64,000 nucleotides of DNA from Haliotis rubra (taxonomy: Eukaryota): the NCBI RefSeq assembly GCF_003918875.1, contig NW_025767743.1:124001-188000 (forward strand), written 5' to 3'. A program made the translations under genes and the position numbers. How positions within the stretch are numbered: the first letter of the stretch is position 1; every line of letters begins with the position of its first letter. Of the stretch, positions 29,770 to 35,599 are shown piece after piece. The notes beneath the pieces are model-generated. The model had not been told where the DNA came from. It searched no databases and worked only from the letters and a program-made list of their open reading frames with translations.

Positions 29770-32700
29770 TTAATAATATCTCTGAGAATCTCTCTCATTC
29801 CAAGAATCTTTCTCATTCCAAGAATCTCTGTCATTCCGAGAATTTCTCTGATTCCAGGAATTTCTTTCATTCCAAGATTCTCTCTCATTTCCATAATCTC
29901 TCCCATGCCAAGAATCTCTGTCATTCCGATGACCTCTCCGATAATCCTTGGAATATTTTGTCTTGGACAGTTTCTTCATTTTGGTCATATATTTGGAAAG
30001 GCCTTCATCTTTGACATGCAAGGGCCTAGATATCCTAATGTCAAACTCAATGTCATGTTTGTCTTCGATGTGTGTTATCAGTGTTTCCATGGCATCTTTG
30101 ATGGCGCCATCTATGTCACCATATTCCTCGTTTGTGAAATCGTCCCACACGTATTCGCCTGCTTCCTCGTCCTCAGGTGGACAGTCTATTCCGATGGCAA
30201 GACTGGTCATTTCCTGAAACACAACAACCGTGAAAACAAACAACCAAACAAACAACCAAAAGACAGTGAGATGCATCTCGTTCTGGATACTCTCAAAGGC
30301 ATGAAATGATAGGTATTCAGCAATACACTTGTCAAATTATACCTATTACAATATTTTTGTGTAAAAATATCAAGGCTCGTATATAGGTGGACATAGGTGG
30401 ATCCAGAGGGGAGGTGCAGGGGTGCGCACACCCCCTTTTGTCCTGAAAGATTATTAAATGACCATTAAAACTCTCGGGAAAATGAAGTGTGCACCCCCAC
30501 TTTCTCGAGGGTGTGCACCCCTCCTTTCTCAAAAAGCTGTACCCGTCCCTGGTGGAACACTAAAAAACATAAAGCCTTTTCAAGGCATCCATCTGCAATG
30601 TTCAAGGATTCTTTAGTTGGGTTATTAGCTTTAGTTTGTCAAATATAGTTTAAATACAACAAACAATAATTTAGTCATCAGTGAGTGAGTGAGTTTGGTT
30701 TTACGCCGCTTTTAGCATTACTCCAGCAACATCACGGCAGGGGAAACCAGAAATGAGCTTCACACATTGTACCCAGTGGGGAATCGAACCCAGGTCTTCG
30801 GCGTGACGAGCCAACGCTTTACCCACTAGGCTACCCCGCCCCCTTTAGACATCAGACGAAAAACTAGTAGTATGAACAAAACTATTTTAAAGCAGATATA
30901 TTTCACAACCAACAAACATAAATTATTAATGCAGGCTATTGCAAATGTCTTCCAGTGAATGTCAATGATTATCACTACCTGTTATTATCTGAACATCCGT
31001 TCATGTCTTACTTATGTGAAAATACTTCTGGATTTCAAAATTAAAACACAATACTTACATCTGATTTGAGTGTCTCCATCGTGGATGCCACGCCACTGTG
31101 GCTGAAACATCAACACATTCCCTATAATAATAATAATACACATTCATAAAGCGCAGCAATTCACAAATATGATGTGCTTTGTGTACTAGCTGAGAGTTCA
31201 TCGCTGGAACTTGTAGTCTTTTAAGTCTCGAGATTGTAAATCTTTCGATCGTAAATTACAATCGTGATCTTCTGCGCGAAAGTTAGAAATAATGAGTTTA
31301 CATTATTATGTAATGCCGAGAAGACCTTACTTCTGCCTTCTCGGCAACCCTGACGGTGAAAATCAAGGGGAGACTCTGGGAAGGTATTGCAGAGACGTGA
31401 GTGACTTATCAATAATTTCTGTTTGTTTACATAATATATAATGTGACTTGCGCTGCCAAAATTAATAACTACAACAAACGCTGCCATCTTGTTCATACAC
31501 AACAATCGATCGTAAGTAAGTCACAGACAGTCATAAGCAACTTAAGGAAGTGATTTTAACTTTCAACTAATGAACTATTGTAACTTACAATCGCTTTGAG
31601 GAACGGTGGAGTGCTTGTAAGTTAAAGTTACAATTTGATTGTAGTGGTTTACAGGGCCCTGTTCAAACAAGTACAGTCATCCCTCGCAATAATGCTCTTC
31701 GTGATACCGTGGTTTCAGGTAAACCATGGGGTAATCTGTGACTCCCATAACAAGGCGATTATAATCTTCATGTCATCGGTAATAGCAGATCACCAAATCC
31801 GCTGTTGTGCTCAAGTTAATGGTGTTAGAAACTACCGAAATTCAGTGAGGATCACGATAAATAAGTTTCCATTTTACACATCCTCATATTAAGGGTTTTC
31901 AGATGCTTTAGAAACATTCGTGGGGTTCATTATTAATTACACGAACAGCGGAACATCGTACTAACTTATAAAAGACAACTCTATCATAAAGACATAACAA
32001 TGTTTGCTGTGATGCAACACACCGCATTATAGGGTGAGCAAACACTGCCATCCGAAAACGTATGATGTCAGAAAACAAATGACAAAACAATTTTGTATGT
32101 CTTTAGTTCTGTTCTAACTATGTGATCAGTGAATGATGACCCTTTGTACTGTATTTCAGTTATATCACAGTCTGGTATCTAAACATAAATCTTTGGTAAT
32201 TAAGAAAACTGCTCTTCACTATTGACAAATAGGATTAGTCATCAAATTGTACAATGTGTCTCCTGTTCTTATATTCTATTGACCATTTTGACCACTGACT
32301 AGCCTCTTACCTGTCTATGTCCACTTTGGAGATGTCAAACTCCCCTTTGGCCATATCTGGCAGTGCATGTACCAAATACACATTCTCCGCTTTCACGTCA
32401 AAGAAGCGAGCTGGAACAGCAGAATTTTCATAGATTGTAAGAGTTGAAAATACACACTGAGTCACACATGATAAGTTATTATAACATTCCTCCAATCTTT
32501 GATGGTATATCATCATCATCATCATCATCATCTTGTCTGCTCAAAACTGGATTATTTACAGAGTACCACCAAAAATGCTTCAATATTGCTGAGTGCGGCT
32601 TTTAACAACAAGCATGCAGCAGCAGCAGCATTATGATCCTCCTCCACTTGATAGATACTAGTATCAGCTCAAAAGCAGAATAGTATTCCCCAACCCGTGT

Positions 32701-35403
32701 ACGCTTTCTAATTATCTGAACTCCCTGGGGAGTATATGCCCAAGCTGCCAAGTGTGACGCTAGAAAGTTCTAACATCAACCTAACATATCAAGTATCCAA
32801 TCCCTGCTTGAGGTACTAAGTCACTTGCCCAAGGTGACAATACAAGTCTTGGCACCTATATGGGTGAAGGTATGTATTCATGTTTCCATGATTTGGTCAT
32901 CTACTGGTAGTGGTGTCGTGTGGTATTGTGCATAGCGCTCAGGTCACAATCAGTTGAAGTTAAGCAACGTTGAGCGTGGAGAGTCCTTGGATGGGTGACC
33001 GTGTGTGACAGCTTGACTCCTGAGAGTTTCTAGGACTTCAGTCCTGCCCCACAACAAAGCACATGTGATACATGTGGTCTCACCTTAGGCAAGTGAGTTT
33101 GCTCAAAATTGCCTCTGTTCACCCAGCAGAAAATGGGTACCCGGTGAAATAAGTTGTGAGACTATTAACCTTCTAGCGTCTAACAGGCAGCTTGGGTTAT
33201 CCGGGGTAATAATGATCAGATTGTGCGCTTTGAGCAGGATATCTAGCCTGGAAAAGGCACATTATAAATATTCTCATTATTATTATAAATATTCTCATTA
33301 TTATAAATATTCTCATTACTGGTGCTTGAGGCCGTTGTTTTGAGAGCACATGGTGACTGTACAGTAGTGTTGGGAATTGGTTAAAATCCCATAATTGATG
33401 ATTGGTTCATTACAACCGATCAATCATCGAAAATAATTGGCTAGCGTCATTTATGAAATTTACCTGGTTATTTTCGTTTGCGCAAAAACAAAAAGAAAAA
33501 AAATGTACTTCTTTGATTTTTATGTTGCAAATAGCACATCTTTAAAAGATGACTAGTATGTTAGAAACATTAATTTCTTGGAGTCTTTAAGATAAACTCA
33601 ATCATGACTTGGAACGAGCTTGTAGTGCTTATGAAATGTAACAGACAAAACCAAACTTGTGAAATATCTTGTTAATGCAAAAAGTTTTCCTGAATTGTTT
33701 GTGTTTGATTATGAGAAAACATGGTCGATTGCTTGGTCGTTTAGTCACTGCGACCAATCTTTGATTATTTCAATTAATCGGATCCCCACTACTGTACAGT
33801 ACACTAGTGACAACACTACAATAACACTATTTTTGGTTCACAGGCTGAATAAAATCTTATCAGAAGCAGGATAGTGTGTACGCACATAGAGTGAGTTAGT
33901 TTAGTTTTTACACTGCTTTTAGCAATATTCCAGCAATATCACGGCGGGGGACACCAGAAATGGGCTTCACACATTGTACCCATGTGGGGTATCGAACCCA
34001 GATCTTCGATGTGACGAGCAAATGCCTTAACCACTAGGCTACCCCGCCACCCCCTACAGACCTAGAGCTTGCTACCATGCTGCTTTAGACCACTTCCCCA
34101 GTCCACCTTAAACATACCCTACCACAACCATCATAACATGGTTTCATAGTTTCATTTCGGAGATGATGTTGCTGTCTTCTTTTTTTACTTTCACAATTCA
34201 AGAACAGAGGTTTGTCTACACCATACCACCTGGTTAACCAAATGGATATCGAGACAAACCAAAATGTTCCAAGTAACTATGGTAACAAGTGTCTTCTGTA
34301 GTCAAAAACTCACTTGATTTTACTACACTTGCTCCATTGATATTCACTGGCAACCGTGGTTTGAGAAGATGCAACTCTGTGTAGTTGCCAATGTGCGCTG
34401 AAGCAGTGAATCCGGCTGTGTTGTTGAACATGTGTGCCGTCCATCGCAGTCGCATCTTCTTCGCCAGAACATTCACAAACTGCATTCCAACACTGTAACG
34501 ACTTGACTGCATTTCTGGGTTGCCCAGACCAACAATCTGAAAAAAATGATTCTGTGTCATAGCGAGTGGTCTTTGGATTAATTGGGTGATTGATATTAGG
34601 AGATCATATCACACTGTCTGGATAGGAAGCAACCATCCAGTCACCATGGTCACCAAGCCTTACCACCTGATACAATAATTTCATCAATCTTTACTGTTTG
34701 TATTCGATACAGCTACATTTTATATCCAGAATCCCAATGTTTTTCCAGCATCTGATAAAACAGTTACAGGTTCCATAAACATTTCGAAAAATCCAGAAAT
34801 ATCGCTTTTTTCTGATAAATGAATTTTGAACTTTGACCTTCAGGATCACGGAAAAAATCTCTCGGTTACAAAGTCAACTGTTCCGATTACCAACAGAGAG
34901 TGATGTGTTGGCGCCTACATTGCAGTACTTCAGTAGCTTACAAAAAGACAGAAACATTAGCATTAGGTAGACACAAATAATACTAATACCACCAACATTA
35001 ACGCATTTTTGTCAATGTCATTTCAGAGATGGTCCAGCTACCGACCGGTGCATGCATGAATGTTGAATAATGCCTATAATGAACCGCTCCCGACAAAATT
35101 TTATATTCCATATCTATAAATCTCCTACACATTGTTGTAATTCAGAACAAATTCAAAAGAAAGGGTTACCAGAAATTTGTTTGTGAGCGATCTTGTCTCT
35201 CCAACTTCTGCCTCCGAGTCGGATTCGGACTCGTCATCTCGAGATGTCAACTGCGGATTACTGGTGCTGGTACAGAATCTGGCTGCAACAACCCGGTTAA
35301 GACTTCGTCGGATGCACGACCTCTTCGCCAAAATACGGGTTTCAACTGTAAAAGACCTGATTACGCCAGAAATACAAGAACTTAGAACAACTGTAAGATT
35401 CAT
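29770..35403 (-). CDS. PTRH1: peptidyl-tRNA hydrolase (Pth/PTRH1)-family protein, 347 aa, catalytic residues substituted
   Basis: Exons 35170-35403, 34314-34536, 32311-32410, 31059-31101, 29770-30213, GT-AG and phases close. Motifs KFLIVGLGNP, LLKPRLPVNINGASV, VYLVH, HSGV, LAIGIDCP are colinear with Pth. The N-terminus is Arg/Ser-rich like a mitochondrial presequence. Ortholog versus paralog is not established. Confidence 0.85.
30680..30844 (-). mobile_element. SINE family B
   Basis: Full-length copy; TTTAG(T/A)CATCAG on both flanks. Confidence 0.85.
32908..33319 (+). mobile_element. SINE family D: tRNA-like start, 5S rRNA-derived segment, CORE-like domain and AT-rich tail
   Basis: GAAGTTAAGCAACG...GTCCTTGGATGGGTGACC resembles 5S boxes A/C. 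CCTTAGGCAAGT...CACCCAGCAGAAAATGGGTACC resembles CORE. The 3' part recurs at 29262-29403 and 43240-43390. Confidence 0.65.
33365..33791 (+). mobile_element. hAT-like MITE with 8-bp TSD
   Basis: TAGTG...CACTA termini flanked by a perfect CTGTACAG duplication (33357-33364 and 33792-33799). Confidence 0.85.
33889..34054 (-). mobile_element. SINE family B
   Basis: Full-length copy. Confidence 0.85.
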
Positions 35404-35599
35404 GATGAAACGATCACCATGTGCATTTAAGACCCAACACGAATGCAACAGAAATTCTAATTGGACCGCACGGAATTCTTTATTTGTAACACGTTTTCTG
35501 ATTGGTCAATCCTGTTATGGAAATAGAAAAGATCGAAATCCCCAAATCTAAAAATAAATTGCGTACGTGAACTTCCTGTGGCTATAAATAACAAGCAGC
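35404..35599. promoter_or_regulatory. putative bidirectional promoter PTRH1-like/HSD17B8
   Basis: 196 bp between divergent ATGs; two ATTGG (CCAAT) boxes (35460, 35501), ETS-like ACTTCCTG (35571) and TATAAA (35583). Confidence 0.6.

Follow-up and report, generated by a model that had tools for sequence, protein, structure and literature searches.

An abalone ortholog of PTRH1 with replaced catalytic residues is probably a conserved pseudoenzyme with an acidic core and a repeat tail

Introduction

What does a gene of the PTRH1/Pth family encode when the catalytic residues of peptidyl-tRNA hydrolase have been replaced and the reading frame is intact? This question is raised by the PTRH1 gene of the abalone Haliotis rubra, which lies on the minus strand at 35403-29770 of a 64-kb stretch of genomic DNA (the window, to which all coordinates refer). 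An earlier note on this stretch had read Tyr, Ala and Ser at the codons of the catalytic His, Asp and Asn of bacterial-type Pth, had proposed a repurposed non-catalytic protein, and had named alignment with molluscan and metazoan PTRH1, dN/dS against a congener and structure prediction as checks. Comparison with a second abalone species, with canonical PTRH1 proteins and with known Pth structures indicates that the abalone ortholog is probably a conserved pseudoenzyme, which is acidic and carries a new tail of hexapeptide repeats.

Results

Replacement of catalytic and tRNA-binding residues in two abalone species

An exhaustive HMMER search with exon 2 of the gene against 1.84 billion representative sequences returned a single close relative (E 7e-40, 96% identity over exon 2). 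This protein (P0001) is named 'probable peptidyl-tRNA hydrolase [Haliotis asinina]' at NCBI and is 91% identical to the window protein. The following matches had 45-48% identity and were all canonical PTRH1. Both abalone proteins were placed in an alignment with 28 canonical ones, namely 17 from molluscs and unnamed relatives, 8 from other animals (sponge to mammal, cnidarians and vertebrates included) and 3 from bacteria.

Exactly at the codons given in the earlier note, His20 is replaced by Tyr92 (TAC, 34497-34495, exon 2), Asp93 by Ala168 (32366-32364, exon 3; GCA in the window and GCT in H. asinina) and Asn114 by Ser188 (AGT, 31097-31095, exon 4), and the same three residues are found in H. 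asinina. In a phmmer comparison of exon 2 with the PDB, which matched 2pth and 3v2i, SRYSVG stood opposite TRHNAG of E. coli Pth (2pth), so that Tyr92 sits on His20. All 28 canonical rows have His at the position of the catalytic base. Near-invariance (at least 26 of the 28 canonical rows) held for the columns of the catalytic His, Asp and Asn alike, and the abalone rows alone were changed at all three. Asn10 (N84), Asn68 (N143) and His113 (H187) were kept, and Met67 is replaced by Val142. The His and the Asp as well as Asn57/68 are described as strictly conserved key catalytic residues of Pth, and the position of Asn114 as taken by Asn or else by a basic residue, with a role in oxyanion stabilisation and with Arg accepted in Thermus Pth (PMC11994314). 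Ser188, which is neither Asn nor basic, fits neither variant.

These changes are part of a broader pattern. Among 33 near-invariant canonical columns, 22 were kept in the abalone proteins, including G81, L82, G83, N84, R91, K137, P138, N143, H187 and core glycines. The other 11 were replaced, identically in both species (H to Y92, M to V142, D to A168, K to S180, G to V182, S to D183, G to S186, N to S188, R to S204, R to C211 and L to W223). In a leave-one-out comparison, canonical rows violated 0-5 such columns each (0-3 in animal rows). Eight of the 12 columns that are basic in at least 80% of the canonical rows were lost, and four columns in the C-terminal half that are basic in all 28 canonical rows read S180, S204, A206 and C211 in abalone. 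Three basic residues are gone from the motif SLAIGIDCP in comparison to RLRIGIGRP. Judged by motif context, S180 and A206 would be the equivalents of E. coli Lys105 and Arg133; the alignment contained no E. coli row. A role of the Lys105/Arg133 clamp as receptor of the tRNA 5'-phosphate has been reported by Fromant et al. (1999; cited in PMC11994314). Nine abalone positions are acidic where canonical proteins almost never are, and the net charge of the Pth core is -13 in abalone versus -5 to +10 in the canonical rows, which bears out the acidic surface described earlier. At the residue level, the abalone protein departs from an active peptidyl-tRNA hydrolase in each feature compared, namely the catalytic base, its Asp, the Asn68/Asn114 pair and the equated basic clamp.

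Sequencing or assembly error, which the earlier note had argued against, was rejected as an explanation, as the independent H. asinina assembly (L001) encodes the same residues. The differences listed for four read sets include no variant at the codons of Tyr92, Ala168 and Ser188.

Purifying selection on the changed protein

The exon lengths of the two species are the same (234, 223, 100 and 43 nt) except for exon 5, with 444 nt in the window and 441 nt in H. asinina. Following Nei-Gojobori, dN/dS between the window species and H. asinina was 0.16 over the whole coding sequence (CDS) of PTRH1 and 0.08 in the Pth core (aa 79-250; dS 0.34, dN 0.026, Fisher p 4e-14), neither of them near 1. Values were higher in the N-terminal 78 residues (0.27) and in the C-terminal tail (0.39); coding dS ranged from 0.25 to 0.34. 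The same pattern was seen between the window and the reads: all 4 differences in the core were synonymous, whereas the N-terminus had 2 synonymous and 4 nonsynonymous ones and the tail 2 nonsynonymous ones only. The low dN/dS of the core together with its exclusively synonymous differences rules out a decaying pseudogene, an explanation that was also rejected on account of the intact frame in two species. Moreover, codons 142 (Val), 168 (Ala) and 187 (His) show a synonymous change between the species with the residue unchanged, which indicates that not only the retained His187 but also the replaced residues at 142 and 168 are being maintained.

The abalone gene at the ancestral PTRH1 locus

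In H. asinina, PTRH1 is arranged head to head with a gene for an HSD17B8-like short-chain dehydrogenase/reductase (SDR) of ~250 aa and is followed by a gene for ~567 aa on the opposite strand. Both neighbours and their orientations are the same in the limpet Patella vulgata and the chiton Liolophura sinensis (downstream gene ~560 aa), and the PTRH1 proteins of these two species (P0004 and P0005, respectively) are catalytically normal. The downstream gene had no Pfam match. The block of PTRH1, the SDR gene and the ~560-aa gene is an old molluscan microsynteny, which extends from chiton to limpet to abalone. Furthermore, limpet and chiton PTRH1 have five exons, and their four intron positions are the same as in the abalone gene: before IVGLGN, after KT/KS of helix 2, before GHNG and after (K/R)(S/T)D. 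Judged by gene order and intron positions, the abalone gene is the positional ortholog of canonical PTRH1 and not an extra paralog.

The head-to-head pair and the downstream gene cover 1588-9801 of L001, 225-9800 of L002 and 1-8411 of L003; in the window, the corresponding coordinate is ~36376 onward on the plus strand. A different gene structure was observed on the animal contig L005 (10001-10321; ENA ERZ25069853), where exons 2 and 3 of a canonical PTRH1 are fused in a single open frame, the second intron being missing, and the SDR neighbour is kept.

Within the 64-kb window, no second Pth-like segment was found. A search with the chiton PTRH1 recovered canonical PTRH1 from a wide range of animals, among them a chiton, limpets, bivalves and pulmonate snails, with E-values of 1e-47 to 1e-55 for limpets and 1e-47 to 1e-70 for limpets and bivalves. 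No canonical PTRH1 with the name of Haliotis was among its 120 best matches, though the H. asinina annotation is contained in that database. This is good, if not conclusive, sequence evidence that abalones are without a canonical PTRH1 copy.

Intermediates between abalone and canonical PTRH1 were absent from the exhaustive HMMER search with exon 2. A word-sharing search with P0001 returned only P0001 and distant bacterial Pth, as too few words are shared to reveal intermediates. The nearest non-abalone matches, P0002 (L004) and P0003 (L005), were considered as intermediates and rejected, since both show canonical TRH, HDELD, GH(N/K)G and RLRIGIDRP. They do not date the change.

The tempo of the change was read from a maximum likelihood tree of the Pth core (LG+C20+F+G4). 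The abalone stem branch had a length of 2.86 substitutions per site compared to a median tip of 0.31 (about nine times), and the branches within the abalone pair measured 0-0.07. As a control for the rate of the neighbourhood, we used SDR open reading frames (ORFs) conserved in all three species. SDR identity was ~55% between abalone and limpet, ~58% between abalone and chiton and ~58% between limpet and chiton, and the corresponding values for PTRH1 were 31%, 30% and 46%. The long PTRH1 stem and the SDR gene that was not accelerated point to a burst confined to this gene, which preceded the divergence of the window species from H. asinina and gave way to stasis. A stem burst with subsequent stasis is the usual signature of a change in function.

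Family membership and predicted fold

Family, PDB and structure comparisons were conducted with single exons and then with the H. asinina ortholog P0001 as a proxy. Exon 2 alone matched Pfam PF01195 with 31.4 bits (cut-off 27; E 2e-7) over profile positions 2-71, and exon 5 gave a weak match over positions 126-173. The same family is assigned to P0001 in precomputed annotation. By descent, the abalone gene is a member of the Pth/PTRH1 family. Residues 73-243 of P0001 matched the Pth of Mycobacterium tuberculosis over the whole domain in a phmmer search (E 4e-13), and plant CRS2 was matched as well.

For P0001, AlphaFold2 with an alignment of 36 sequences gave a model whose predicted local distance difference test (pLDDT) score was above 90 over approximately residues 75-255, with a disordered N-terminus (1-70) and a disordered tail from ~285. 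Foldseek aligned this model with M. tuberculosis Pth at E 2e-16, a target-normalised TM-score of 0.89-0.90 and a root-mean-square deviation (rmsd) of 1.9 Å; CRS2 (1ryb) ranked fifth, with 21% identity. The Pth alpha/beta fold is thus predicted to be intact in the abalone protein, a result that is supportive and not independent evidence.

Gene structure and transcription

Re-derivation of the PTRH1 frame reproduced the clean five-exon structure of the earlier note exactly: every intron is GT..AG, and a CDS of 1044 nt encodes 347 aa and the stop. The protein contains all the motifs quoted there, that is GLGNP, SRYSVG, VHALPD, KVDID, SHSGV, SLAIGIDCP and the KPxxxxN motif (KPRLPVNING).

Three small read sets (X1-X3) behaved like RNA, and a fourth run (X5) like DNA. 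The depth of X1-X3 was 0 across intron 1 (34625-35022) and 2-4 on PTRH1 exons, and X5 showed an even coverage of ~12x over exons and unique intron sequence. For exon 3, the bin depth of the RNA-like runs was the contig depth times 100 nt, so that only the exon is covered and not the flanking intron. In contig X1 record 7, 34314-34536 is fused to 35170-35404, which is the exact junction of exons 1 and 2; exon 1, which has a GT donor, is spliced straight from 35170 to 34536, and its product is predicted to be disordered. The matches of X1 record 3, X3 records 18 and 23 and X2 record 14 end at 30212/30213, 35170 and 34536, and these contigs continue past the match ends for lengths compatible with adjoining PTRH1 exons. 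The exon 5 contigs (X1 and X3), for instance, stop at 30212/30213 and continue into the upstream exons. Transcription and splicing of the gene follow the model, and a wrong joining of exons in it was rejected. The features are listed in Table 1.

Table 1 Features of the PTRH1 locus in the 64-kb window of Haliotis rubra.
Feature	Coordinates	Strand	Description
Exon 1 (aa 1-78)	35170..35403	-	Start codon; N-terminus basic and rich in Ser/Thr, a possible mitochondrial presequence; acidic run SRDDESESDSEAEVGE after it
Exon 2 (aa 79-153)	34314..34536	-	First half of the Pth fold: GLGNP, SRYSVG, KPRLPVNING; based on Pfam, PDB alignment, multiple sequence alignment and X1 and X2 contigs
Exon 3 (aa 153-186)	32311..32410	-	VHALPD; GEFDISKVDID replaces the basic GKxxxKxGGSxx loop
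Exon 4 (aa 186-200)	31059..31101	-	SHSG where the canonical motif is GHNG
Exon 5 (aa 201-347 and stop)	29770..30213	-	SLAIGIDCP for RLRIGIGRP; final helices of the fold, then disordered tail
18-nt tandem array within exon 5	29785..29927	-	~8 copies; degenerate WNERDS-like hexapeptide repeat forming the C-terminal tail
Conserved 5' region common to PTRH1 and the divergent SDR gene	35400..35560	-	94% identity to H. asinina

N-terminus, repeat tail and 5' region

The N-terminal extension of the abalone protein comprises 78 aa compared to ~38-58 in other molluscs. Its first 45 aa include 8 Lys/Arg, 1 Asp/Glu and 10 Ser/Thr. This composition fits the mitochondrial presequence put forward in the earlier note; its helical hydrophobic moment did not stand out from shuffles, 38% of which equalled it, and the region is predicted to be disordered. 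Mitochondrial targeting of abalone PTRH1 is plausible from this composition, and yeast Pth1 is a soluble protein of the mitochondrial matrix (bioRxiv 10.1101/2024.11.20.624519).

The C-terminal 95 residues consist of a short predicted basic helix followed by ~8 degenerate WNERDS-like hexapeptides. At the DNA level, TRF reported a period of 18 nt with 7.9 copies and 78% matches (repeat family D1). The tail is also present in H. asinina, where a single difference of 3 nt in length is located right at its end, and the array is a coding minisatellite kept in two abalone species. Long, unrelated C-terminal extensions were observed in four canonical molluscan PTRH1 proteins from scallops and Physella as well (P0079, P0080, P0018 and P0083; 299-420 aa in total), and tail gain on PTRH1 may be recurrent in molluscs.

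The identity of the 5' region to H. asinina extends over ~165 nt and compares with a coding dS of 0.25-0.34. This conservation points to a conserved bidirectional promoter or 5' untranslated region (5'UTR) shared with the SDR gene. The region also contains a six-codon upstream ORF, ATGGTGATCGTTTCATCATGA (35420-35400, minus strand), whose TGA stop overlaps the main ATG and which is perhaps involved in translational control.

The introns contain repeats. Two copies of a tRNA-derived short interspersed nuclear element (SINE) of ~150 nt, 87-88% alike and in the same orientation, are located in intron 4 (30694-30843) and intron 2 (33901-34051). In every run, the reads covered them to a depth of 10^5 to 10^6 times that of contig units, which indicates a family that is extremely abundant in this abalone. 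ARAGORN detected no tRNA gene in these tRNA-like repeats. Intron 2 also carries a triplet run of the (CAT)n/(ATC)n type with an adjoining (CAG)n run (32500-32542). Elsewhere in the window, a run of N occupies 2516-2667.

Discussion

A conserved protein with replaced catalytic residues

The proposal of a repurposed non-catalytic protein accords with a gene that is spliced, expressed and conserved with a core dN/dS of 0.08 and a predicted Pth fold, the loss of activity being deduced from residues. We propose that a burst on the abalone stem would have cost the protein its catalytic His and Asp, one oxyanion Asn and the greater part of the conserved basic residues, among them the equated clamp for the tRNA 5'-phosphate and acceptor stem. 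It would have shifted the charge of the core from roughly neutral or basic to -13 and added an acidic linker and the hexapeptide-repeat tail. The fold, the GLGNP loop, Asn10, Asn68 and His113 would have been retained through the burst, after which the protein would have stayed near-constant under purifying selection, transcribed and correctly spliced. With the general base, its Asp partner and one oxyanion ligand gone and the tRNA-facing surface acidic, the product can hardly be a peptidyl-tRNA hydrolase, and we infer from these residues that both binding and hydrolysis of peptidyl-tRNA were lost.

In Pth crystals, the peptide cleft readily takes up C-terminal peptides of neighbouring molecules (PMC11994314). 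Since the cleft is partly kept in the abalone protein (GLGNP, Asn10, Asn68 and His113), a role in binding may be guessed. The partner would most likely be a protein or peptide, held in the retained cleft, on the new acidic face or on both, and the disordered repeat tail could act as a second interaction module. The site of action might be the mitochondria, as for yeast Pth1. Within organellar translation or quality control, candidate roles would be those of an adaptor for peptides or basic proteins or of a nucleic-acid mimic. The wider proposition, namely that abalones live without any working bacterial-type Pth, their sole PTRH1 having become in one burst on the stem a Pth-fold protein that is acidic, lacks catalysis, bears the repeat tail and serves a different function under selection, appears evenly balanced to us.

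Several points weigh against this reading. Asn10, Asn68 and His113 persist, so that a residual or altered hydrolytic activity may be present. The alignment behind the AlphaFold2 model was dominated by canonical homologs, from which the retained fold is partly inherited. Expression was seen in low-depth assembled contigs, whose RNA nature was guessed and is backed by their exon-only coverage. The absence of a canonical copy draws on the annotated proteins of one species and on word-based searches, not on a whole-genome tblastn. The comparison covers two abalone species, and the timing of the burst is only loosely bracketed. As to the mitochondrial placing, a part in the quality control of ribosomes in the cytosol has been ascribed to mammalian Ptrh1 (bioRxiv 10.1101/2024.11.20.624519).

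It is conceivable, though improbable, that the protein is still an enzyme, in which the cleft together with Tyr92 and Ser188 hydrolyses another ester or amide, or peptidyl-tRNA by an altered mechanism. Both the retention of Asn10, Asn68 and His113 and the strong purifying selection on the core, cleft residues included, would be in line with this. On the other hand, no Pth-fold enzyme is known to work without the His, and the lost basic columns and acidic surface argue against any tRNA-linked substrate. The Arg of Thermus Pth indicates that the Asn114 position is not absolutely fixed (PMC11994314), but the general base His20 and its partner Asp93, described as strictly conserved in the same work, are both gone.

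Just as improbable in our view is that a canonical PTRH1, relocated or retro-copied, resides elsewhere in the genome and left the abalone locus free to diverge after duplication. Pseudoenzymes usually arise through duplication and later divergence, and our search reached the annotated proteins of H. asinina, not whole abalone genomes. A relocated canonical copy is, however, difficult to reconcile with the ancestral synteny and the four ancestral intron positions kept at this locus, with the one abalone cluster in the exhaustive HMMER search, and with the lack of a canonical copy in the window and of a Haliotis-named one among the 120 best matches to the chiton query. That the gene is simply on its way out, as a relaxed or recently inactivated PTRH1 that has not yet acquired a stop codon, is barely credible. 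The missing catalytic residues and the low expression in the X1-X3 contigs would fit such a fate, and PTRH1 may be dispensable, as animals have other peptidyl-tRNA hydrolases. Pth2 and Vms1 have been discussed as such (bioRxiv 10.1101/2024.11.20.624519). However, two species at a dS of ~0.25-0.34 both have an intact frame and intact splice sites, the core dN/dS (p 4e-14) already refutes relaxation, the new residues were kept through synonymous change, and the promoter/5'UTR region is conserved at 94%.

Comparison with known systems

The abalone protein, which we consider a probable pseudoenzyme, shares with bacterial Pth, yeast Pth1 and canonical PTRH1 the fold (TM-score 0.89-0.90), GLGNP, Asn10, Asn68, His113 and the core glycines, and with canonical animal PTRH1 also the gene position, the introns (as in limpet and chiton) and the N-terminal extension. 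It differs from them in His20, Asp93 and Asn114, in the equated Lys105/Arg133 clamp and six other basic columns, in its charge of -13 and in its size, since canonical PTRH1 has ~200-260 aa and lacks the acidic linker and the ~95-aa repeat tail that bring the abalone protein to 347 aa. PTRH1/Pth is among the most conserved enzymes of translation, yet abalones rewrote its active site and most of its conserved basic surface under a core dN/dS of 0.08. The lineage may therefore serve as a natural experiment on whether PTRH1 catalysis is dispensable in animals, and on what other tasks the Pth fold can take on. PTRH2 (Pth2), ICT1 (MRPL58) or ANKZF1 (Vms1), which have unrelated folds and are not homologous to the abalone gene, could presumably make up for the lost activity; of the yeast proteins, either Pth1 or Pth2 is able to substitute for bacterial Pth (bioRxiv 10.1101/2024.11.20.624519). 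Within the literature library searched, no paper was found that connects Haliotis with peptidyl-tRNA hydrolase. For annotation, the name 'probable peptidyl-tRNA hydrolase' of the H. asinina protein is probably wrong as to activity.

The closest parallel is plant CRS2, a Pth homolog that lost its activity through substitutions and takes part in chloroplast group II intron splicing with its CRM-domain partners CAF1 and CAF2 (PMC9275481). CRS2 (PDB 1ryb, 1ryn and 1rym) has the Pth fold and was among the best structural and sequence matches to the abalone protein. The abalone case is independent in origin, as an animal PTRH1 ortholog outside the plant clade with 21% identity. Animal mitochondria are not known to need such factors. 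The precedent of CRS2 invoked in the earlier note is apt as an analogy and goes no further, the likeness being one of functional analogy only. CRS2 arose beside retained plant Pth genes; in abalones, the ancestral locus itself would have been converted. If this holds true, the abalone protein would be the second known non-hydrolytic recruitment of the Pth fold after CRS2 and the first in animals, that is, an animal counterpart of CRS2 that originated when the ancestral locus itself was converted, with no spare copy involved.

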